Shown here: positions 2,133-44,500 of the stretch, in pieces
Layout of the letters: the number at the start of each line of letters is the position of its first letter
Position numbering within the stretch: the stretch's first letter is position 1
Assembly: GCA_950097015.1 (NCBI GenBank)
Contig: CATNEN010000001.1
Span: 11,408,001-11,472,000 of the forward strand
Length of the DNA stretch: 64,000 bases
Direction of reading: 5' to 3'
DNA from: Macrostomum hystrix
Lineage: Eukaryota; Animalia; Platyhelminthes
Translations under genes and position numbers: made by a program
Notes under the pieces: generated by a model
Databases searched by the model: none
What the model saw: the letters and a program-made list of their open reading frames with translations, nothing else
Told to the model about the DNA's origin: nothing

Positions 2133-3280
2133 TTCGTATTTAATTGAAGTACAATGTGGACCATTGTTTATGGTAAGCGTATAATAATCATGATCAGTAA
2201 TGAAAGCAGCATTTTTCGCTCAAAAGACAACAAAAGTAGATAAAATATTGATCAAGATAATATATTTAATGGTTTATAAGTAACGAATTCGCAGCATCTG
2301 ACATCACTCATTTACAATGGTGCAGTCGTCAATGTCGGACACAAAATAGAATTCAGAGAGCAGAGCTGATTCAGAGCATTCGTCAAGCTCACAGGTTCGT
2401 TCAAGTTTAAAGCAACATATTTTGCAGGATATGTTTTATTATGCCCATGATATAAAATGAGACTAACGCTAAATTTGGCTTTCATAGCACAACACATTGC
2501 TCAGAGTAAGACTGCTACTCAGCCTCAGCCAACTCACTCTACTCTGATCGGACGTCAGTGCAGTATATTTGTTAATCATTTAAAATAGGCCGAAAAAGTT
2601 CAGAAAAGCAAGAAAAAAGCAGCAAAAGTGCAAGTAAAATATATTCATCGAGCACAAATAACATTCCTGTGCAAAGTGCATTTTACGATAGGTAAAAATT
2701 AATGAAGTAACGTGTTAAATATATAGCAGTTCTCTATTGAGTAGAACTGAACATGCTAAGAACATGAATCACATTCGGTAACTTTTGCTATTTTCCGTCA
2801 CTTTCGGAGTAGTTTGCTATTAGTTCACTTACGTTCTCTTCCAAGAAATTTCTGAAACCTCCCCTAGCTCAGACAGGTGAGACAAGCCTTGCTGCTGCTG
2901 TTGCTGCTAAGGGCTGTCATGCCTTAGCTGACCGGCTAATGTAGAAAAAGTTAAGGCACTGCGGATAAAATTACAGACTGTGAAAATGTTGAAGAGCAAC
3001 GAATAAACAGTGTTTCTGAGCCATTTCAATAAAAATAATTTTACTGGAGACTTCAGTTACCAATGTAAAGAAATGAGAAAGTTTTGCATGTGCTTTACGA
3101 GAATCAAAAGCGGCCAGATCAGCCTGGTCATCAGCAGCCGCTTCAGCGACGAGCTGAATTCAACACCCTGCGGTCTTCTGCATCACAAAATAGTTACATA
3201 ATAGTTTCAGATTCACGAGCACCAAAGACTGCCGCGGCTTCTCTGTCTCCATGGCAAGTGGCAACGCATCAATGTCTCTT

Positions 3281-5540
3281 TCACGGCTCCTCCCACGACT
3301 TCGCAAACCGCTGCAGCTTTGCGCGGACCCAGCCGTCTCTCTGTTGCTCCACCGTCTCCATGGCAACAAGCCGACCGAAGTCAGCTCTGACTGGATGCAG
3401 CCGCGATCTCACCCACAGCCTCCGCTCCTCATCCTCCAAACTCGAGTGACCGACGCTGCAGCTGCGAGTGGAAATTCGCCACCGCTTCTCCCTGACCCAG
3501 CGGATCTTCTCCTCGTCCTGCGTCTCCATGGCGACGCGTATCTCGTCACTGACGGTCTTCATCTGTCGCAGGCTGAACTCCACGTGCTCAACTTGGTCGC
3601 TGTAGTGAGCCAGAGTGAGCAGCTCCTCCAAGTCCGGGTCCTGTGCGAAGTCGATTGCTGTGCGATTGCGGAGCAGCTCAGCCTGGAGACTCCAGCTCAG
3701 GCAGCGGAAGTTCACGTACAGGTGCGAGGAGCGAGGCTGTGACAGTCTGGCTGTGAGCAGAGTCTGCGTGAACTCGGGAAGGAATGGGAATCGAGGCGGA
3801 GTGTCTGCTGGGAGGCAGAACCTCCACGCCCAGTCCGAGTCTGAAGGCAGCCGATAATCTCTGATATCGTCAGGCCTCATTCCACTCTGAACTCTGTGAC
3901 TCTGGAGCTCCATCGCGAGTCTCTCAGCCTCTTCGGAGTCTCCGAACTTCAAATGCGCCATGGCGGTCATGCACAGGGCGGCGCACTTGCACCACCGCAG
4001 CTGATGCAAGAGACTGAGCTGCCTCATCAGGGTGTCTCTGTCTGCAGACTCTGACTGCAGCTCAAGAACACAATGGTGCACCACACTGTACACGTCTGCT
4101 GGCATCTCAAAACTGCTATAATCAGATTCTTGCCTAATCTGAGTGACAGCAAGCGGCGCTGTCAGTGGCAGCAGGGTGAACGGGTGAAAGTAGAAGTTCT
4201 CTGACTGCAGAGGTCTCACGAGTCTCCTCATCTGCTCTACCACTCCGCCGATGTCGCTTCTCAGCTCTCTCAGTCGGTCTCGAACCATCGCCTTCGTGTT
4301 GTCGAAGTCGCCGCCGATTCCAGCGTTCTTGAAGTAGAGCGGAGCGCCGGGCATGAAGAAGTGCGGCATGCACTCATCGGGTGAGCTACTTGAGTCGATG
4401 AACCTCAGCATCATGTCGAGAGACTCCTTCAGCAGTGAGATCAGATTCTGAGACTGCCAAGCTTCAGCATGTGGGTCTGTGCCATGCTTCTCCAGCATGA
4501 AGAAGAGCAGAGTCTTCGCATGGTAGGTCTTGAGTCCAGGTGTGTCCAGAGTGAGTGGCAAATGTCTCTTGAAGATGAACTTGATGATTGAGAACAGCTG
4601 TCCATGGACTGTGCTCAGCTGTCTCATGGCCTGTTTCTCTTGGAAGCTGAAGCTCACTCTGAGCTCATTGGTCTCATTCGGTCTGGTCGCCCTCACCAGG
4701 TGAACAGAAGTGTTGCTGTGTCCAATCAGCTGTTTGACTCTGTCCTCACAGAAGACACTGCAGCACCGGATCGCATGGCACGTGTCCTGAGCAGGCCGCA
4801 CACCGCATGCCTTGGCTGAGACGGCAGGTTGGCTGCCTGCATTGAGTGGTGACCAGTGGAGCAGATTTATGCAAAAATTTATCGATAAGAAATAGGCAGT
4901 TATGTTTAATATCAAGAAATTATAATTATTTCGCTCATGATATATTATAGTTCAAAACTATTATTTAGTCCAAACCAGCTCAAAATAGCTCAAAACCATC
5001 GCTCAAACTGTACATCATAAGGTAGTGGAAAACAATTTGCACTGAAATGTGAACCAGCGGGAAATAATTATAAAAAGGATAAATTTAACAATGAAATACT
5101 AATACACGCTCGTAAAAAGATGAAAAAAATACTTAAAAAAAAAGAATAGCAGGTGTGACTCACCCGACCCCACTGCCACCTGAGCGTGACCCTCCATGAC
5201 CCGCAGCTTCGTGGCAGCTCTACAGTCTTTATAAGGATTCTTCGTTCCATCGCAACCGCCCTCCAGATGCAGCTCTTGCCCTTGAACCAGCACAGTCCAG
5301 TCAATGTCTGAGTCAGCCGCTGTCCTGCCGTTCACTTGCACCAGACTGTTGGCCCAGCCCTCTGCGTAGCTGCCTGTCATCTGCATCTGCGAGTTCTGAG
5401 TGAGGACTCGAGCGACTCCTTGCAGCCAGTCAGCCATTCTCTGCTGACACTTTGCTCTCTCCTGAGTGAATCCCGCCTCGCTGAGCAGTCGGTGCAGTTC
5501 CTCACTGAGCTGCCAGTCCGGCTGTGGGTAGTCTCTGAGC
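3281..5540 (-). other. Mab-21/cGAS-like NTase domain and C-terminal helical region (exons 3-4 of the ANK-cGLR gene)
   Basis: GS motif (TGSYAEG), DxD (DSDID) and a candidate third acidic residue (QDTCHAI), followed by the RxSFSxxE, YHxKT and PHFF motifs of Mab-21 family proteins. Confidence 0.88.
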
Positions 5541-8500
5541 CTGGAATGATGGGGAATTCAGTCACCTGATGGGTTGTACACCTGCACAGACTGGCATCTC
5601 AAGCTGATCAGCTGAGAGTCCAGCTGCTGCTGCATTCAGACTGGCATCTCAAGCTGATCAGCTGAGAGTCCAGCTGCTGCTGCATTCAGACTGGCATCTC
5701 AAGCTGATCAGCTGAGAGTCCAGCTGCTGCTGCATTCAGACTGGCATCTCAAGCTGATCAGCAGAGGGGAATTTCCAATCAGAATGAGAAACTCACTCAG
5801 CGAGACCCGAGTCGGTGCGGAGTCCAGCTGCCTTTTTCTTTTTTCTGCTGCTGGAAAAGGGCGCAGGTTTAGATTAGTTTTACCCCAAACGGTCTGCACG
5901 AGTACAGCAAGGGCAAAAAGCGGGTTAAAATATTTTAGAATATAAAAACGGACTTACTTCGAAGTTCTGTTCTCCAGCAGCCGCAGCACCTGCTGATGTC
6001 CCAGCTGCTCCGCCACCTGCGCGCACGTCTGGCCCCGACTGTCCCGATGACTCGCATCCGCTCCTCTGTCCATCAGAGTCTTGGCTGCTCGCGCGTGACC
6101 CGCCTCACAAGCTCGCGACAGAGCTGTCCGACCCTGACTGTCTTCAGCTCGCACTGACGCACCGAGATCCACCAGCCTCTCGATGAGCTCGTGATGACCT
6201 GCATCAGCTGCCAGCATGAGAGCAGTGGCTCCTGTGCTGTCGGGCACAGCGACATATTCTCTGCTGAAACGCTTGTCATGGAGGAGTGTGAGAGCCAGTG
6301 CGACATGGCCATGGGAGATGGAGACACAGAGCAGCTGTGTGATCTGAGCTGGCTGCATTCGAGACAGAGTCTGGCTGAGAACATCGTTCCTGCCCTCAAT
6401 GGCCATCGAGGCGGTAAAGCTGAGGACTTGGATGGACTGGAAGAGCCACTCGGGCTGAAGTACAAGTTCCTTGACGACATTTTCACGGAGTTGAGAGCAA
6501 GCCACGACTGCACAGACATAACGAAAATCTTGGTCAGCATCTGTCGCCAACAAAAATTTGACCACTTCCAACTGACCATATCTTGCAGCAGATTTCACAA
6601 CCTCCTTGCAGCACTTATCTCTCAGTGTTTGGTCAGTAATTGTCGGTAGCAACAATTCGACCACTCCCCACTGATGATTGATTGCAGCATATTCCGCAGC
6701 CTCCTTGCAGAACTGATCTCTCAGTGTTTGGTCAGCAATTGTCGGCACCAAAAATTTGACCACTTCCAACTGACCTCTGCTTAAAGCAGATTCCGCAGCC
6801 TTCTTGCAGCACTGATCTCTCAGTTTTTGGCCAGCAATTGTCGGCACCAAAAATTGGACCACTTCCAACTGACCATTTCTTGCAGCAGATTCCGCAGCCT
6901 CCTTGCAGCACTGATCTCTCAGTGGTTGTTCAGCAATTGTCGGCACCAAAAATTGGACCACTTCCAACTGACCATTTCTTGCAGCAGATTCCGCAGCCTC
7001 CTTGCAGCACTGATCTCTCAGTGGTTGGTCAGCAATTGTCGGCACCAAAAATTGGACCACTTCCAACTGACCATTTCTTGCAGCATATTCCGCAGCCTCC
7101 TTGCAGCACTGATCTCTCAGTGGTTGGTCAGCAACTATCTGCACCAGAAGCTTCACAATTTCCCAGTGATGGTGATTCGCAGCAAGACGCCAATTCAGTT
7201 CGCACAGTCCATCTCTTCTCCAGCTGTTTTTGATTGAATTTAAGTGATTTCGAACTTCGGTTTTCAGCCCCTGTGCTACAGCTCGCTCAAAGCTGATTTT
7301 CTGTCCCATCTGTCTATTCCTCCATCTGTCGATCCATCCATCTGTCAATGCATTTATCCAATCAAGGATTATCCGGAAATGGTATCTAGTAAGGATGCAG
7401 AACTGATCTCTCAGTTTTTGGCCAGCAATTGTCGGCACCAAAAATTGGACCACTTCCAACTGACCATTTCTTGCAGCAGATTCCGCAGCCTCCTTGCAGC
7501 ACTGATCTCTCAGTGTTTGGTCAGCAATTGTCGGCACCAAAAATTTGACCACTTCCCACTGATGATTGATAGCAGCAGATTCCGCAGCCTCCTTGCAGCA
7601 CTGATCTTTCAGTGTTTGGTCAGCAATTGTCGGCACCAAAAATTTGACCACTCCCCACTGATGATTGATTGCAGCAGATTCCGCAGCCTCCTTGCAGCAC
7701 TTATCTCTCAGTGTTTGGTCAGCAATTGTCGGCACCAAAAATTTGACCACTACCAACTGACCATTTCTTGCAGCAGATTCCGCAGCCTCCTTGCAGCACT
7801 GATATTTCAGTGTTTGGTCAGCAATTGTCGGCACCAAAAATTTGACCACTTCCCACTGATGATTGATAGCAGCAGATTCCGCAGCCTCCTTGCAGCACTG
7901 ATCTTTCAGTGTTTGGTCAGCAATTGTCGGCACCAAAAATTTGACCACTCCCCACTGATGATTGATTGCAGCAGATTCCGCAGCCTCCTTGCAGCACTGA
8001 TCTCTCAGTGTTTGGTCAGCAATTGTCGGCACCAAAAATTTGACCACTTCCCACTGGCCATTGATTGCAGCAGATTTCGCAACCTCCTTGCAGCACTGAT
8101 CTCTCAGTGTTTGGTCAGCAATTGTCGGCACCAAAAATTTGACCACTTCCCACTGGCCATTGATTGCAGCAGATTCCGCAGCCTCCTTGCAGCACTGATC
8201 TCTCAGTGTTTGGTCAGCAATTGTCGGCACCAAAAATTTGACCACTTCCGACTGGCCATTGATTGCAGCAGATTCCGCAACCTCCTTGCAGCACTGATCT
8301 CTCAGTGTTTGGTCAGTAATTGTCGGTAGCAACAATTCGACCACTCCCCACTGATGATTGATTGCAGCATATTCCGCAGCCTCCTTGCAGCACTGATCTC
8401 TCAGTGTTTGATCAGCAATTGTCGGCACCAAAAATTTGACCACTTCCAACTGACCATTTCTTGCAGCAGGTCTCGCAGCCTCCTTGCAGCACTGATCTTT

Positions 8501-10474
8501 CAGTGTTTGGTCAGCAATTGTCGGCACCAAAAATTTGACCACTTCCAACTGACCATTTCTTGCAGCAGATTCCGCAGCCTCCTTGCAGCACTGATCTTTC
8601 AGTGTTTGGTCAGCAATTGTCGGCACCAAAAATCTGACCACTTCCAACTGACCATTTCTTGCAGCAGGTCTCGCAGCCTCCTTGCAGCACTGATCTTTCA
8701 GTGTTTGGTCAGCAATTGTCGGCACCAAAAATTTGACCACTTCCAACTGACCATTTCTTGCAGCAGATTCCGCAGCCTCCTTGCAGCACTGATCTTTCAG
8801 TGTTTGGTCAGCAATTGTCGGCACTAAAAATTTCACCACTTCCCACTGACCATTTCTTGCAGCAGGTCTCGCAGCCTCCTTGCAGCACTGATCTCTCAGT
8901 GTTTGGTCAGCAATTGTCGGCACCAAAAATTTGACCACTTCCAACTGACCATTTCTTGCAGCAGATTCCGCAGCCTCCTTGCAGCACTGATCTTTCAGTG
9001 CTTGGTCAGCAATTGTCGGCACCAAAAATTCGACCACTCCCCACTGATGATTGATTGCAGCATATTCCGCAGCCTGCTTGCAGCACTGATCTTTCAGTGT
9101 TTGGTCAGCAATTGTCGGCACCAAAAATTTGACCACTTCCCACTGATGATTGATAGCAGCAGATTCCGCAGCCTCCTTGCAGCACTGATCTTTCAGTGTT
9201 TGGTCAGCAATTGTCGGCACCAAAAATTTGACCACTTCCCACTGGCCATTGATTGCAGCAGATTCCGCAGCCTCCTTGCAGCACTGATCTCTCAGTGTTT
9301 GGTCAGTAATTGTCGGTAGCAAAAATTCGACCACTCCCCACTGATGATTGATTGCAGCAGATTCCGCAGCCTCCTTGCAGCACTGATCTTTTAGTGTTTG
9401 GTCAGCAATTGTCGGCACCAAAAATTTCACCACTTCCCACTTGCCATTGATTGCAGCAGGTCTCGCAGCCTCCTTGCAGCACTGGTCTTTCAGTGTTTGG
9501 TCAGCAATTGTCGGCACCAAAAATTTGACCACTTCCCACTGACCATTTCTTGCAGCAGGTCTCGCAGCCTCCTTGCAGCACTGATCTTTCAGTGTTTGGT
9601 CAGCAATTGTCGGCACCAAAAATTTGACCACTTCCCACTGACCATTTCTTGCAGCAGGTCTCGCAGCCTCCTTGCAGCACTGATCTTTCAGTGTTTGGTC
9701 AGCAATTGTCGGCACCAAAAATTTGACCACTTCCAACTGACCATTTCTTGCAGCAGGTCTCGCAGCCTCCTTGCAGCACTGATCTTTCAGTGTTTGGTCA
9801 GCAATTGTCGGCACCAAAAATTTGACCACTTCCCACTGACCATTTCTTGCAGCAGGTCTCGCAGCCTCCTTGCAGCACTGATCTTTCAGTGTTTGGTCAG
9901 CAATTGTCGGCACCAAAAATTTGACCACTTCCAACTGACCATTTCTTGCAGCAGATTCCGCAGCCTCCTTGCAGCACTGATCTCTCAGTGTTTGGTCAGC
10001 AATTGTCGGCACCAAAAATTTGACCACTTCCCACTGACCATTTCTTGCAGCAGGTCTCGCAGCCTCCTTGCAGCACTGATCTTTCAGTGTTTGGTCAGCA
10101 ATTGTCGGCACCAAAAATTTGACCACTTCCAACTGACCATTTCTTGCAGCAGATTCCGCAGCCTCCTTGCAGCACTGATCTCTCAGTGGTTGGTCAGCAA
10201 TTGTCGGCACCAAAAATTGGACCAGTTCCAACTGACCATTTCTTGCAGCAGATTCCGCAGCCTCCTTGCAGCACTGATCTCTCAGTGGTTGGTCAGCAAC
10301 TGTCTGCACCAGAAGCTTCACAATTTCCCAGTGACGGTGATACGCAGCAAGAAGCCAATTCAGTTCGCACAGTCTATCTCTTCTCCAGCTGCTTTTGATT
10401 GAATTTAAGTGATTTCGAACTTCGGTTTTCAGCCCCTGTGCTACAGCTCGCTCAAAGCTGATTTTCTGTCCCAT
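3281..10474 (-). CDS. Ankyrin-repeat-array / Mab-21 (cGAS-like, cGLR) nucleotidyltransferase fusion protein, ~2167 aa; exons 10474-5958, 5850-5797, 5540-5164, 4836-3281 (upstream in-frame ATG at 10612 possible)
   Basis: ORF 5954..10612 ends at an AA|GTAAGT donor (phase 2). This joins a ccttttccAG acceptor (5850), a GA|GTGAGT donor (5797, phase 2), a cattccAG acceptor (5540), a G|GTGAGT donor (5164, phase 1) and an aatgcAG acceptor (4836), all without frameshift (6504 nt = 2168 codons). The product has ANK repeats, then LSEELHRLLSEAGFT, GSYAEGW...DSDID, QDTCHAIRC, VHLV...ELRVSFSFQEK, LKTYHAKTLLFFMLE and MPHFFMP, which are Mab-21/cGAS family motifs. Confidence 0.85.
5587..5762. repeat. 50-bp intronic tandem repeat, ~3.5 copies
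   Basis: cagactggcatctcaagctgatcagctgagagtccagctgctgctgcatt repeated at 5587, 5637 and 5687, partial at 5737. Confidence 0.95.
6530..10276 (-). repeat. Coding tandem array of 99-bp (33-aa) ankyrin-type repeats: 29 units, then a duplicated N-cap, then 6 units
   Basis: Consensus QCCKEAAESAARNGQLEVVKFLVPTIADQTLRD, read directly from ORF 5954..10612. The AAxxGxxEVVxFL core is ankyrin-like. Three canonical ANK repeats follow (GATALMLAADAGH, GRTALSRACEAGH, GQTCAQVAEQLGH). Confidence 0.95.
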
Positions 10475-10875
10475 CTGTCTATTCCTCCATCTGTCGATCC
10501 ATCCATCTGTCAATGCATTTATCCAATCAAGGATTATCCGGAAATGGTATCTAGTAAGGATGGATTCAAGGATAAATTTAAGCAACAAAACAAAAAATCC
10601 TGTCAGTTCCATTTGTATGATGCCTTTTAGGAAATTTAAGTGATTTAAGTGAAGTTCGGTTTCCTGCTGGTGCAGCCCCTGTGCTACAGCTCGCTGATTT
10701 TCTGTCCCTTTTGTATGCTGCTTGGAGTTTTTAGAAACCTTCTTGACTTTCTTGATCTCTGAAAGTTTGATAAAATACTAATTGAAAAGGTCATAAAAAT
10801 TATCATTCATTATTATTAGAGTTTGAAATTGTTGGGCTGGGAATTACATAACTAATATTTTTGATGGGATTTCTA

Positions 10876-11187
10876 GCTGTGGATGGGATCAGCTGTGAAT
10901 GGGATCAGCTGTGGATGGGATCAGCTGTGGATGGGATCAGCTGTGGATGGGATCAGCTGTGGATGGGATCAGCTGTGGATGGGATCATCTGTGGATGGGA
11001 TCAGCTGTGGATGGGATCAGCTGTGGATGGGATCAGCTGTGGATGGGATCAGCTGTGGATGGGATCAGCTGTGGATGGGATCAGCTGTGGATGGGATCAG
11101 CTGGGGATGGGATCAGCTGTGGATGGGATCAGCTGTGGATGGGATCGGCTGTGGATGGGATCAGCTGTGGATGGGATCAGCTGTGGA
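10876..11187. repeat. 16-bp minisatellite (gctgtggatgggatca)n upstream of the ANK-cGLR gene
   Basis: Direct tandem periodicity. Confidence 0.95.
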
Positions 11188-11799
11188 CCCCTGAGGGAGC
11201 TTGGCAACCAAATTAACACTTAGGCTGCATGCATGAGACCAGAGACGAAAACGGGCATGGAAATTTACTCAATTAGAAGGACATGCCGATCCACATAAAT
11301 TCCACCAATATGCGAGTATTAATTGACCCTCCCCCAGTTAGAGCTTGTCTTGCATGGCAACCAATTCAACTGACACTGATTCGTGTGCACCTAGCGGGGC
11401 TGCAATCCCTGAATTCCATTGTCAAAAACTATCAGAAATAGTTGAGTTACTGACAAACTCCCCTCCTGGAGAGGGTGAGAAGTCACCAATATTATCAGAG
11501 CTTGTGATTCGCAGTGACTCACGGCTCCCCAGCAGCTCACGGGCAGCGGCACGAAGCCCGCAGTCGCCTCACGGTTAATGGAAGAAGCAGGTGATGCGGT
11601 CGGCTGAAAATGATGTTGAAAACAGGGAATGGAATTTGAAGGGGATAAGTTGTGAAGTGGATCAAGTGGATATTGAATCAACACAACATGGATTTAATGG
11701 ATTATAAAATGACAATAAAGTACTTTTATTCATAATTGACTCAACTGATTGAAATTAAAATATCGAAGATTAGCTGGAGGTGGGATCAATACAGAGCTT

Positions 11800-15399: not shown

Positions 15400-27390
<11,991 letters not shown>

Positions 27391-39044: not shown

Positions 39045-40516
39045 TCAGGTGCTAAGCAGTCGTTCAAGAAGGCCACCTGCGTTTCCGCCGCTGCCACCGC
39101 CTGAAGACGATGATGATCGTCCAATTGAAGGCGGCTGTTGTTGCTGTTGCTGTTGCTGCTGCTGTTGCGGCAACTGCGGCGACTGCTGCTGCTGCTGCGG
39201 ATGCTGATGCTGGTGCTGGTGCTGGTGCTGCTGCGGATGAACATGATGCAGATGATGCTGATGATGATGCTGATGCATCAGTGGAGTTGCGGAGCCATTG
39301 CTGCCACTGCCGCTGCCATCGTCGGGAGTCCTAGCTGGAGTTGTTGAATCTGGCGCGCTCTGATGCCGACTGTGAAGCAACAGCTGCTGCTGCTGCTGAT
39401 GGTGGTGATGGTGCTGGTGCTGGTGCGGATGATGATGGTGATGAACATGATGGTGATGATGCTGATGCTGAGGAGTGGTCGGAGTGGCTGGGTTTCCAGC
39501 AGACAGGGCCGGGCTTGGCTGCTGATGCTGGTGCTGCCGCGAGCTCAGCAAGGCGTCCATTGGGGAGCCAACAGCAAAGGCAGCTGGCGACAGAAAAGGG
39601 GACTGCTGCTGCTGCTGCTGCTGCTGGTGATGATGATGCTGGAGCTGCTGAGAACTGTTGCTTCGACGAGCGGTAGCGCTGGAGGATCCTGGGGAATCGG
39701 CGATCACTGACAGAGGCGACGGTGGCTGAACCTGCTGGCGGCGAGAATTGGCTGCGGTGGAGAACGGCTGTTGCTGCGGCTGTTGCTGTTGCTGGAGGCG
39801 TTGAGACAACGGCGGCATTTGCGGCGGAGGTAGCTGGGGCGGCGGCGGCGGCGGAGGCTGAGGGCCGTGCTGGGCCTCCATGTCTAGGATGATGTCGAGC
39901 ACTTCCGGCGGCAGAACCTGGCTTGACGGTGACGGTGGGGCCACGACAGACAGCTGATTCGGTGGCGGCTGCTGCTGCTGCTGCAATTGCTGCTGATGCG
40001 GGTGCTGATGATGCAGCATCGACATGTGCTGCTGCTGCTGAGGTGACAGCATCTGTATTGACATTTGCTGCTGCTGCTGCTGCTGCTGCTGAATCTGATG
40101 CTGATTCATCTGAGACGGTTGATGATGTTGCGACGCCATCGAGTGTGGCGGAGGAGGCGGCGGCGGTGGCGGCGGTGGCGGCCGCAGGGAGTGCTGAGGC
40201 GACATCAAATGCAGCGGCAGTTGCAAGCCCACATTACCAGACGATGAAGTAGTCGCAGTGCTAGTTGATAGCATAGCGCTAGACATAGTGGATCGGGGTT
40301 GCTGCTGCTGCTGCTGCTGCATCTGCAGCTGCTGATGGTGGTGTTCACCAGGCGATCGGTTCACAATCTTCTGGCGCAGTTCACTCTTGATCATTTCTCT
40401 ATTGCTGGTTGGCATTGGGGCAGACGATGCGGCTGAGGAAGCTGGAGGGCCGCTAAATACAATGGCTGGAGGCGCGGCAGTGACCTGCTGATGCTGCTGC
40501 TGCTGTTGCTGCCACC

Positions 40517-40550
<34 letters not shown>

Positions 40551-40897
40551 TTGCTGCTGCAGCGGATAAGGCGGTGGAGGAGGTGCTGTCTGCTGTAGTT
40601 GCTGCAGTTGCTGTTGCTGCTGCTGTTGCTGAAGCTTGACGTTGGGTGGCACAGGGTACTCTCGCATCTGAGTAGAAAATGGAACATTGGATCGATAGAG
40701 CTGAGGCGAAGCGGGCGGTTGCTGCTGCTGTCGCGATGTCATTGGCGAGACGGGAGCAAACTGCCTTTGCTGCTGCTGCTGCTGCTGCTGCTGCATTTGC
40801 TGTTGGTGCGACAATTCCGTTTCTTTTTTTAACTGATCGGCAAAAATTTTAACAGCCTCTGGATTTGCAGCCCAATTGTTGTTAGTGACAACCGAAG

Positions 40898-40935
<38 letters not shown>

Positions 40936-41464
40936 GACAGAAGGTTCTGCCTTAGACTGGCAGGTTGATGACTGACGGCAGTTCTGCTATCAGGCATAAA
41001 TGTGCTATTTAACTGGGCCATGACGTACTCATCAGCGGCAATTAGATCGCGACTAGCGCCAGACACCGGAGCCGAGGTAGCTAAGGCGGAGCCTTGAACA
41101 CTGCTGTCGCGTCCGTTAATGCTGTCTAAAAACTGGCTGATAATTTCCAATTCGTTACTATCCGAGTTGCTGGACTGCGTAGTCAGGGAAGGCTTCACTG
41201 CCTGCTGCTGCGGCTGCTGCTGCTGCTGTTGCTGCTGCATAGGCGCAATCTCCGGAATGGTTGAAGTCAACGAACTCGGCTCATTGTTAAGCAGATCGGC
41301 CAGCATTTTATTGCGCATGAGTATATTCTGGCCGATGGTGGCGGCATCGCTGCCTCCGGTGGCGCTCGAGCCCGGCTCGTATTTTATAGACTTCCTGGGC
41401 GGCCTGCCGCCACCGTCGGTGCTGCTGTCCGGATTGCCGCGATCTGACGGCTGCCGCTTTCGCT

Positions 41465-41504
<40 letters not shown>

Positions 41505-44500
41505 ATTTATCAGAATCTGATTTGACGATGTTGAACTATTTGATGGTGGACCGCCGCAGCCGCCAACCGAAGTTGGCTCGCTAAAATATGAATTCAACGG
41601 ATCGTCATCTAGCAGTGAGGAGGCCTGCTGAGCGGAGCAGCTGTTGTTGCCTCCGCCGCCGCTGTCAACGGCGCTGATGAGGCCGAGAATACAGCTGCCA
41701 AGCTCAGCGTTAGCTGCCTGGCCGCCTGGAGTAGTTGACGTCACCTGTTCGGATTTGCTGCTCTGCTGAGACTCCTTATTGCGCAGCATCGCCTGCGGGA
41801 TTAAAGGTGTGAATTTTTGCTGTAGGTCGGGGGTTCGAATCTGTAGATAGGCAAGTCAGATGTGCAAAACCTGAAGGTGCGCGCGCTCAGGAACCAGCGC
41901 AATTATTTCTAAATAAAGCCTCAAAACCCTTTGCTTTCTAGCGATTTGTTATAATCTATTATAAAGCCGATATGTTTAGAAAAATCTATATTTGTTTTTT
42001 TTTCCGAAAAGATGATTACTTTGTGCCATTAGAACATGCTATTACACAGAATATACTGACGCAGCTAGATCCGATGAAGCGTATGGAAAAAGCCTGAAAA
42101 TGAATGACTAAAGCAACAGCGCCAAACCAATTCTCTGCTTCTTTTGCTGCTTTTGAGGAAGAGGGAAGTAAAAAATGAAGGATGGGAGCCACACCCACAC
42201 ACACAGTGCATAGCCTGTATATAGCAGTCAGGTCGATCTTATAATTAGGCTTCCTAGTCTGTTGAGTATCATGACGCACTTAAAATAATCGATGCTTATG
42301 ACTGCATGCTCCGTGTGACTCGAGGATTGAGACTATACGGATTTTTATAGAATATAAGATAATTTTATCAAGTGCAATCAGGTGATTAATCCTTGTTAGC
42401 TGTATAGCAACAGGTGCATAATTTGATACAGGTCTCCGATAGCTTCTTGCTGAATAGACAATTTAGTAAACAAATCCGTGCTTAGTAATTGATAGCTAGC
42501 TTAATAAGGAAATGCGTTAGGTAAATGAATCAAAGCTAATTAGGTAAATAGAGAGTTAGGACGCTAAATGAGGAGTTCAAAAATGGAATAATAAGATTGC
42601 GTAAGTAAATAGAAAGCTTGATAAATTACGATGTTTAGAGTCGAGTAAGTAGATTTAGAGTTGGGTAAGTAGATTTGAAGTTGGGTAAGTAGATTTGGAG
42701 TTGGGTAAGTAGATTTGAAGTTGGGTAAGTAGATTTGGAATTGGGTAAGTAGATTTGGAGTTGGGTAAGTAGATTTGGAATTGGGTAAGTAGATTTGGAG
42801 TTGGGTAAGTAGATTTGGAATTGGGTAAGTAGATTTGGAGTTGGGTAAGTAGATTTGGAGTTGGGTAAGTAGATTTGGAATTGGGTAAGTAGATTTGGAG
42901 TTGGGTAAGTAGATTTGGAATTGGGTAAGTAGATTTGGAGTTGGGTAAGTAGATTTGGAATTGGGTAAGTAGATTTGGAGTTGGGTAAGTAGATTTGGAA
43001 TTGGGTAAGTAGATTTGGAGTTGGGTAAGTAGATTTGGAATTGGGTAAGTAGATTAAGAGTTGGGAAAGTAGATTTCAAATTGGGTATTGAAATGGAAGA
43101 GCGGCCCTTGTAAGTTTCTATTTGAGATGCATCTCAAACGAATTCACATGAATTCATATATCAGCTGTGAATCAATGGTTTTAGTCTGCCGAGCAGTAGC
43201 TACATATAATTTTATAAATAATTTAATCAGGTAGACACGCAAGAAAAGAAATGATTATTTGTCTCCAAGCTATTTGATTCTGATTTTAGTTTGGGATTAT
43301 CCAGAAAGAAAATGATGCAAATTGAATAAAAAAACTGACGCAACTTTCACATTTTTGTGTCACGGAAAGATTAATAAAGAAAAAAACGCGGCAGAAAATT
43401 TCCCCAAAGATTTGGATTAATTATGGGGCATCAAAGAACAACGATCGCGTTCTCACCTGGAACGACTGACGATTTTTAGTAACCGTATTGGAATGAGCGC
43501 TCGGACCATTCAGCAGCTCCATCAGCAGAGAGCCTTGCTGCTGACGCCTTTGTTGTTGCTGCTGCTGCTGCTGTAGCGGCAGCTGCTGCTGGCTGTAGGA
43601 CTTCTGATCGTCTAACAATGGCAGGCCAGTGTCGCTGGTGGTGCTCTGCGGAATCTCTGGCGGACTCTTGCCGGGTCCGGGCTCGGGCGACCGCGCATTG
43701 GCGTTCGGACTGCGAGCCAAGCCTGCCGCGGCCGCGGCTGCGGTGGCAGACGATGTCGAGCCAACAGGCGACTGCTGCTGATACTGCGGCTGAGGATAAG
43801 GTCCAGAGCCGGTGGGAGTTGTAGACGGTGTAGTGGCAAGTATTCTACGCTCAACATTGGCTTCAGTCAGTTGGTTCATAAATTTATCGTGGCCACCGAA
43901 GTGCGGCTTCCAGATGTCCATCATTTTGCTGCGTATCTCGGTGGCCTTCTCCGGGTTTGGTTGGCGAGAGAAATTGCGATACATCACGCCCAGGTTGATC
44001 AGGGTCTGACGCTCGCGATCGTCAAGGTTGGCCAGCACCTGCGAGATGCACGTGTACAAAATGCTTTGTCACCTTCTGAGCTGAACTTCCTGCTATTCAG
44101 TCTAATCCCGTCTTCTCCTGCATCAGCATTTTCCATAATTTAAATCCCTAAATCTCCATAAATCTAATTTTGAAAATCTGTAGAAATGCTTTTTTACCTG
44201 TTGTTTAATATCGTTTCGCTGTTGTTGCTGCTGTTGCTGCTGCTGAGACTGGGGCTGTGAATTCAGGACATTGTGTAGGTAGCCCTGCTGCGGCTGCTGC
44301 TGCTGCGGCTGCTGCTGCTGTTGCTGTACAGACGATGATCTACTGTAGGGAGGCGCTGCTAAGCCGGGCAGTCTGTAACCAGTCTGCTGCTGCTGCTGCT
44401 GCTGACTGTGAGAATTAAACCGACCAGGTCCCGCGCCCGGACTAGGGCTGGCCAACGATGGCGACGGTAGATTGCTGCCGCCGGCGCCAGAGTAAACAGA

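Follow-up and report, generated by a model that had tools for sequence, protein, structure and literature searches.

Within a 64,000-nucleotide stretch of the flatworm genome of Macrostomum hystrix (contig CATNEN010000001.1, positions 11,408,001 to 11,472,000; hereafter the window) we find one spliced gene of four exons, at positions 3281-10612 of the minus strand. It joins an interrupted solenoid of ankyrin (ANK) repeats, through a basic linker, to a nucleotidyltransferase (NTase) of the type found in cGAS and the cGAS-like receptors (cGLRs), and ends in a tail. We consider it probable that the product is a ligand-gated synthase of a nucleotide messenger. Judged by genome and protein searches, the gene belongs to a radiation that is specific to Macrostomum and comprises at least about 150 loci, with widely varying numbers of repeats.

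In the mechanism that we favour the enzyme would be inactive at rest. A ligand, probably a protein and not a nucleic acid, would be bound by the ankyrin solenoid or have its binding relayed through it, and this signal would switch on the synthesis of a nucleotide second messenger, to be read by a downstream receptor. The analysis establishes the structure of the gene, splicing in the family, the fold, the conservation of the active site, the size of the family and the variation in array length; that the enzyme is catalytic, that the array is its sensor and that the gene acts in immunity are inferences.

Gene structure and family

A preliminary description of this DNA had proposed that three open reading frames (ORFs) form a single frame through phase-matched GT-AG introns. 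This is upheld by the splice sites, the intron phases and the joints seen in the family. The three minus-strand ORFs lie at 5954..10612 (1552 amino acids), 5099..5437 and 3281..4915, and together with a 54-nucleotide micro-exon they are linked by GT-AG introns into the four-exon gene (Table 1). When the junctions are read base by base, the 3′ end of exon 1 is found at 5958 and is followed by GTAAGT, therefore the TAA at 5954-5956 falls in intron 1. The intron phases are 2, 2 and 1, each in step with the frame of the downstream ORF. Annotated proteins of Macrostomum lignano fuse the same parts, e.g. with the string ..VGAGSQPAV.. spanning the exon 3/4 junction.

Transcripts were examined by mapping contigs from four public runs on window positions 3000-6529. 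Two of these runs, X19 and X20, are from one organism and act as RNA, with a summed depth of 40-480 in exon bins and of 0-4 in the intron bins 4888-5123 and 5596-5713. One contig equals window 3000-3401 with zero differences, therefore X19 and X20 stem from the species or strain of the window. In the RNA-like contigs the joint 5958/5850 skips 107 positions, shows CT..AC on the plus strand, has 55 letters on its shorter side and corresponds to intron 1 exactly. The second joint, 5164/4836, leaves out 327 positions (cut +1), has a shorter side of 67 letters and corresponds exactly to intron 3. No joint is listed for intron 2; a contig end at 5796 carries 29 loose letters with a match of ~83% to the start of exon 3 and, on this likeness, is the same exon 2-exon 3 join in a more distant paralog. 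Two simple alternatives were rejected: separate ANK and NTase genes on account of the spliced joints and the annotated fused homologs, and a bacterial or viral origin because the gene has introns, has relatives in flatworms only and is matched exactly by eukaryotic RNA contigs, all of which speak against it.

Where the ANK part gives way to the NTase, the micro-exon codes for a basic patch, SRKKKK, which is not kept in the M. lignano homologs. As a matter of speculation, it might be a nuclear localisation signal.

The preliminary description knew of no characterised receptor with so hyper-expanded an architecture, but a search of the genome for paralogs shows that it is not singular. In this genome of 220 Mb and 42 contigs (the window is C1:11408001-11472000) exon 3 has at least 148 matches and exon 4 at least 84, almost all of them without stop codons, and many of the family loci stand in tandem clusters on contig C1. 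The closest protein relatives are hypothetical proteins of M. lignano with 72-84% identity, most of which combine ANK repeats with Mab-21_C. An exhaustive phmmer search with one of these homologs, P0001, returned 180 representatives, and every full-length relative looked up by name was from M. lignano. Several are 1000-2100 amino acids long with long ANK arrays; beyond the flatworms there were just weak matches to the C-lobe in molluscs. The suspicion that annotations may already hold ANK-fused cGLRs was correct, as those of M. lignano contain ANK-Mab21 proteins of 1378-1575 amino acids. One gene model, P0030 (PAA93319.1, 2111 amino acids), has a caspase domain (Peptidase_C14, E 2.8e-27) after its ANK-Mab21 part; this may be a genuine effector fusion, or two gene models may have been merged.

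For a closer comparison we sampled 14 loci of the subfamily, 12 of which yielded a first exon with the start MGQKIS. The complete exon 1 frames hold ~5, 7, 7, 7, 12, 14, 20, 35 plus one partial (the present gene) and ~47 repeats; two more loci with an early frame break have ~6 and 19-26 repeats, and one is no more than a short fragment. The giant array of the window is therefore one end of a family range. It is exceeded by the paralog at G000:C1:13850001-13860000 (L016), whose first exon is an open frame of 1810 amino acids with ~47 repeats and a single N-cap.

The enzyme domain

The enzyme part is only partly recognised by sequence methods. Pfam gives Mab-21_C (PF20266) with E 2.9e-7 and 31.0 bits against a cut-off of 24.1, i.e. 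the C-lobe alone. Exon 3, searched by plain sequence in PDB and Pfam, had no relevant match, and the only PDB match by plain sequence search was MAB21L1 (E 0.0036). When the full family alignment served as the profile for a search of PDB, ankyrin proteins swamped the result. With the ANK-bearing rows removed only the C-lobe was reached, with Sp-cGLR1 at E 2e-4 and cGAS at E 0.02-0.1.

The fold is clearer from a model of the homolog P0001, which has a pLDDT of 83.9 and a pTM of 0.85. All top Foldseek matches of this model are cGAS (E 3e-8, TM 0.52-0.57 on the target). In a structure comparison over representatives the best scores were those of oyster Cv-cGLR1 (Z 18.3, rmsd 3.4, 261 aligned), mouse cGAS (17.1), coral Sp-cGLR1 (16.4) and beetle Tc-cGLR (16.2), followed by MB21D2 (15.7), MiD49 (14.6), MAB21L1 (14.2), bacterial CdnC (13.9) and OAS1 (11.4). 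The likeness to cGAS and cGLRs that had been suggested for this gene is thus supported by structure. An alignment of the family with a mollusc Mab-21-like group by hhalign covers 293 columns (probability 99.8%, E 1.9e-29), and the GS, SDxD and third-Asp columns are aligned.

All three elements of the active site reported in the preliminary description are present, conserved in the family and canonically placed in the secondary structure. In the window GS is at 5369-5374 and D-I-D at 5300-5308 (both exon 3), with the third Asp at 4784-4786 (exon 4). In the P0001 model GS follows strand 1, D87 and D89 stand at the start of strand 2 and D148 at that of a later strand, as is canonical for the NTase fold. 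Of the 50 paralog loci sampled, 46 retain the pattern GS..SD[IV]D, including 20 at only about 30-45% identity, which argues for an active site that works across the family. Going by the modelled homolog, the enzyme part is an NTase of the cGAS/cGLR type with an intact GS / DxD / D site.

The enzyme is followed by the family-conserved tail, which was modelled with a pLDDT of 80.1 as helices and a small sheet. A fold search with the tail found no specific match; the best were tetratricopeptide repeat (TPR)-like proteins with Z 8.1-8.7, which is within the background for helical models. On this model the tail looks TPR-like.

The repeat array and its duplicated start

Most of exon 1 consists of ANK-type repeats of 33 amino acids (99 bp). 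TRF reports a period of 99, 38.2 copies and 87% matches, and the assignment to ankyrin made in the preliminary description is confirmed by Pfam (Ank_2 with E 1.5e-135 in 25 stretches, Ank with E 1.9e-74). The proposed architecture, an N-cap, 35 near-identical repeats, three canonical ANK repeats, the NTase and a helical tail, stands in its parts, except that the array is not continuous. The order in exon 1 is a leader, an N-cap, 29 full repeats and one partial, the leader and N-cap again (amino acids 1073-1155), 6 repeats, a degenerate repeat and the 3 canonical ANK repeats.

The two copies of the leader and N-cap are 98-100% identical in DNA, and the similarity sets in sharply at 10561 and 7396. 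At the breakpoint, the partial repeat (IAGQKLRDQFC) shares its type with the fourth repeat of the inner unit, i.e. the part of the gene downstream of the second leader. In addition, a decayed third start module lies upstream of the gene (Table 1). These copies, taken together, point to repeated and recent partial duplication of the 5′ end of the gene, and by the same comparison the inner leader and N-cap are a young internal duplication. A TTTCAG site just upstream of the relic module, at ~10760, resembles a splice acceptor and may have served as one.

The first ORF of the preliminary description begins with the ATG at 10612. MGQKIS is the N-terminal start in all sampled paralogs, and upstream of it the other paralogs align only from ~12 nt before the MGQKIS codon. 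This comparison makes a start at MGQKIS (10474) more likely than one at 10612. The N-terminus so defined would fit an N-myristoylation-type MGxxxS pattern. From the coordinates, the predicted protein has 2167 amino acids from Met47, 2213 from the ATG at 10612 and 1112 from the inner Met.

The last of these figures belongs to another explanation of the gene. The outer giant array may be a by-product of a young duplication, or an assembly error, so that the working gene is the inner unit, with its start at the Met at 7309, 6 repeats and 1112 amino acids. The upstream N-cap and 29.5 repeats would then be a 3′-truncated copy of the gene in chance in-frame read-through. The near-identity of the two starts (the 87-nt leader and the N-cap both occur twice) and the position of the breakpoint, inside a repeat of the inner unit's fourth-repeat type, speak for this explanation. 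So does the distance from N-cap 2 to exon 4, which at 2316 nt is close to the 2348 nt of the short-array paralogs and thus the standard geometry. Furthermore, the present gene is the sole one of the 12 sampled subfamily genes with two N-caps in the open frame of its first exon. By our estimate the 29-codon leader would be open and in frame by chance in ~8% of cases, hence selection is not needed to account for it. On the other hand, the whole frame of 1552 codons is open, and intact paralogs with a single N-cap and 20 and ~47 repeats indicate that the family tolerates long arrays and probably makes use of them. With no more than 87 nt of upstream sequence left to it, the inner unit may lack a promoter of its own, and there are several substitutions between the copies, which an exact duplicate made in assembly would not show. 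We regard this explanation as possible and rather unlikely, and continue to prefer a single gene that reads through the interrupted solenoid into the enzyme.

The variation among the repeats is limited and structured. Nine codon positions have common variants over the 35 full units (unit positions 9, 11, 20, 21, 24, 26, 28, 29 and 32). All of these common variants change the amino acid, and synonymous variants are rare. The variants are linked into about three cassette types, ES..RNGQLE, RP..RNGQWE and ES..INHQWG/E, and the pattern looks as if unequal exchange had shuffled a small set of unit types, not like a code of freely combined positions. That amino-acid changes are in excess suggests selection for diversity, as a reading of the counts and not of a formal test. 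In our own register positions 9-10 form the most variable pair, and others lie on helix 2. The positions randomised in DARPins were considered as a template for this variation, and the fit is partial, as only ANK positions 13 and 33 of the nine coincide.

Table 1. Features of the ANK-NTase gene, in window coordinates, in the direction of transcription
Feature	Position	Strand	Description
Relic start module	10640..10760	-	ATG changed to AAG, 7-nt deletion; matches 5′ flank and start of paralogs (by eye)
In-frame leader	10475..10612	-	Amino acids 1-46, from ATG at 10612 up to Met47; last 87 nt (10475-10561) duplicated within array
N-cap 1	10313..10474	-	Amino acids 47-100, begins MGQKISFERAV; probable translation start
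Array 1	7397..10312	-	29 full 33-aa repeats and a 15-aa partial (..IAGQKLRDQFC), ending at amino acid 1072 at duplication breakpoint
Leader copy 2	7310..7396	-	Amino acids 1073-1101; 87 nt, 100% identical to 10475-10561; in-frame as ILTRYHF...WRNRQ
N-cap 2	7148..7309	-	Alternative inner start Met1102 at 7309; a few substitutions relative to N-cap 1
Array 2	6554..7147	-	6 ANK-type 33-aa repeats
End part of exon 1	5958..6553	-	Degenerate repeat/cap and 3 canonical ANK repeats (best Pfam stretch amino acids 1431-1524, 6041-6322)
Exon 2	5850..5797	-	54 nt; TTTTCCAG before, GTGAGT after; basic linker (..SRKKKKAAGLRTDSGLAE)
Exon 3	5540..5164	-	CATTCCAG before, GTGAGT after; spine helix and NTase N-lobe
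Exon 4	4836..3281	-	AATGCAG before; stop codon 3281-3283
Rest of NTase core and Mab-21_C lobe	4211..4836	-	First part of exon 4; third catalytic Asp 4784-4786; Pfam match 4337-4555
Helical tail	3281..4210	-	Second part of exon 4; ~309 amino acids (3284-4210), family-conserved, then stop 3281-3283

Directly upstream of the gene, at 10865-11200, is a minisatellite of 16 nt (CCACAGCTGATCCCAT, ~20 copies), and intron 2 contains, at 5600-5790, ~3.5 tandem copies of a ~50-nt unit (..GATCAGCTTGAGATGCCAGTCTGAATGCAGCAGCAGCTGGACTCTCAGCT..). The remainder of the window bears little relation to the gene. Dense short tandem repeats with long open frames, several of them on both strands, at 665-2147 look like low-complexity DNA and not like a gene. 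An exon with a Pecanex C-terminal domain (PF05041, E 1.9e-81) at 15403-16950 of the minus strand belongs to an unrelated neighbour gene. Two further minus-strand ORFs, of 1100 amino acids (24088-27390) and 914 amino acids (39045-41789), have no Pfam matches; an atlas search with the first was empty, and the second would encode a low-complexity protein rich in glutamine, histidine and proline.

Activity, partners and comparison with known systems

The ANK-fused cGLRs are a class that has already been described. In Li et al. (2023, preprint, PMC9980059) some cGLRs are reported to carry tetratricopeptide or ankyrin repeat modules, and the Macrostomum family is already counted in this class: Table S3 of that work lists five M. 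lignano proteins of the same family, whose NTase parts were cloned and screened with dsDNA and poly I:C. Two of the five closely resemble the enzyme domain of the present gene. Most of the cGLRs screened there were inactive in vitro, probably for want of the right ligand. Among the papers searched, we found none other than this preprint that ties Macrostomum to cGAS biology.

Several observations weigh against a messenger synthase encoded by this gene. The Mab-21 NTase model PF03281 matches neither exon 3 nor five homologs, and the genome's one PF03281 locus belongs to a separate gene, on contig C24. The evidence for the fold comes from a natural homolog, P0001 (72% identical, itself lacking an ANK part, modelled with the family alignment), and in the structure comparison the non-catalytic proteins MB21D2, MiD49 and MAB21L1 trail the best cGLR by just 2-4 Z units. 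Among the transcripts, the listed contig with the intron 3 joint is 3-4% different from the window and is, by this divergence, from a near paralog or allele, not provably from the present gene; for the intron 1 joint no contig is listed. The joints therefore show the splice pattern of the family, and not strictly that of this gene. The 15 active enzymes named in the preprint are from insects, anemones, molluscs, hydras and corals, with no flatworm enzyme among them.

The downstream receptor is also uncertain. The genome has one match to STING_LBD, at G000:C2:9104529-9104996, and it is sub-threshold, with 25.1 bits (E 1.3e-5) where the cut-off is 27. The locus (L013:1000-1989, minus strand) holds an open frame of 330 amino acids with the motif FAWNFAFTFLRLILP, for which a word-based homolog search was empty and an atlas search gave noise-level Ras/Roc matches. 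All 11 of its weak PDB matches are STING proteins, aligned on this motif. We suggest that the locus may be a divergent flatworm STING, as a candidate.

Some of these points would be explained if the domain were a non-catalytic scaffold with the Mab-21 fold, like MiD49/51 or MAB21L1, whose array and tail mediate protein assemblies and make no messenger. The narrow spread of the Z scores, the lack of a clear STING in the genome and the lack of reported activity, in the material of the preprint used here, for the five M. lignano relatives in the screen are all in line with this. Nevertheless, GS, DxD and the third Asp are kept here and in the 46 of 50 paralogs across deep divergence, which is unexpected if catalysis is dispensable, and Mab21L1/2/3 are described in the preprint as having no predicted functional active site. 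We consider a scaffold role improbable.

Another explanation, to which we give a similarly low probability, is that the enzyme is active and is not a synthase of cyclic dinucleotides that feed STING. It could make linear 2'-5' oligonucleotides in the manner of OAS, or another cyclic oligonucleotide, or nucleotidylate a target, with the family-specific tail or another partner as the effector. The fold also matches CdnC, other CD-NTases and OAS1, the ~300-amino-acid tail is conserved after the enzyme, the STING candidate is weak, and the caspase domain of P0030 likewise stands after the enzyme. Yet the closest relatives by structure and by profile are bona fide cGLRs, and the sequence gives no pointer to any particular other product. 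Our preferred reading remains a cGLR-type synthase that would be gated by a ligand of the solenoid.

A bolder proposal, which we make tentatively and think unlikely, is that the Macrostomum ANK-cGLR radiation is a germline-encoded, fast-diversifying repertoire. Unequal crossing-over would shuffle the few repeat cassettes and alter the number of repeats between paralogs (5 to ~47), and the many resulting solenoids would bind different ligands other than nucleic acids, probably proteins, and each be wired to a messenger synthase. The isoelectric point (pI) of the P0001 core, 8.35 against the >8.5 quoted for nucleic-acid sensors in the preprint, gives no clear hint of the type of ligand. If true, this would be NLR-like logic on a cGLR, in a phylum said to be mostly without them: the preprint states that there are no cGLRs beyond Mab21-like proteins in nematodes and most platyhelminthes. 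Macrostomum is an exception among the flatworms, with a very large cGLR-type family and a structured repeat array before the enzyme. If the arrays bind ligand, they offer a direct route to activators of cGLRs that are not nucleic acids, and would make it possible to study how a change in repeat number leads to new specificities. What the present gene adds to this is modest. It is a well-preserved and very long member of the family in which, unusually, the start of the gene has been duplicated internally.

The nearest known systems are the animal cGLRs, in particular the subclass fused to ANK or TPR modules (PMC9980059). The present gene shares with them the cGAS-type fold, the GS / DxD / D site and the ankyrin fusion, whereas its array is far longer (35 full repeats, with ~47 in a paralog) and built of near-identical 99-bp units. 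The Macrostomum paralogs also vary widely in repeat number, carry the ~300-amino-acid helical tail and go unmatched by PF03281. With vertebrate cGAS the shared elements are the bilobal NTase core, the spine helix and the catalytic triad. The identity is only 14-18%, a structured ANK solenoid stands where cGAS has its N-terminal region, and the pI gives no sign of a DNA-binding surface.

The fungal and animal NLRs with ANK, TPR or WD40 arrays and the lamprey VLRs are likewise large, clustered families, with a solenoid of highly similar repeats whose number and cassettes differ between paralogs. In Macrostomum the output domain is a nucleotidyltransferase and not a NACHT or NB-ARC domain, and the likeness is one of analogy, which does not on present showing extend to somatic assembly. 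Finally, MAB21L1, MB21D2 and MiD49/51, which are not known to be catalytic, have the same fold (Z 14.2-15.7). In contrast to them the Macrostomum family keeps the full catalytic motif, is massively expanded and is fused to ankyrin repeats.

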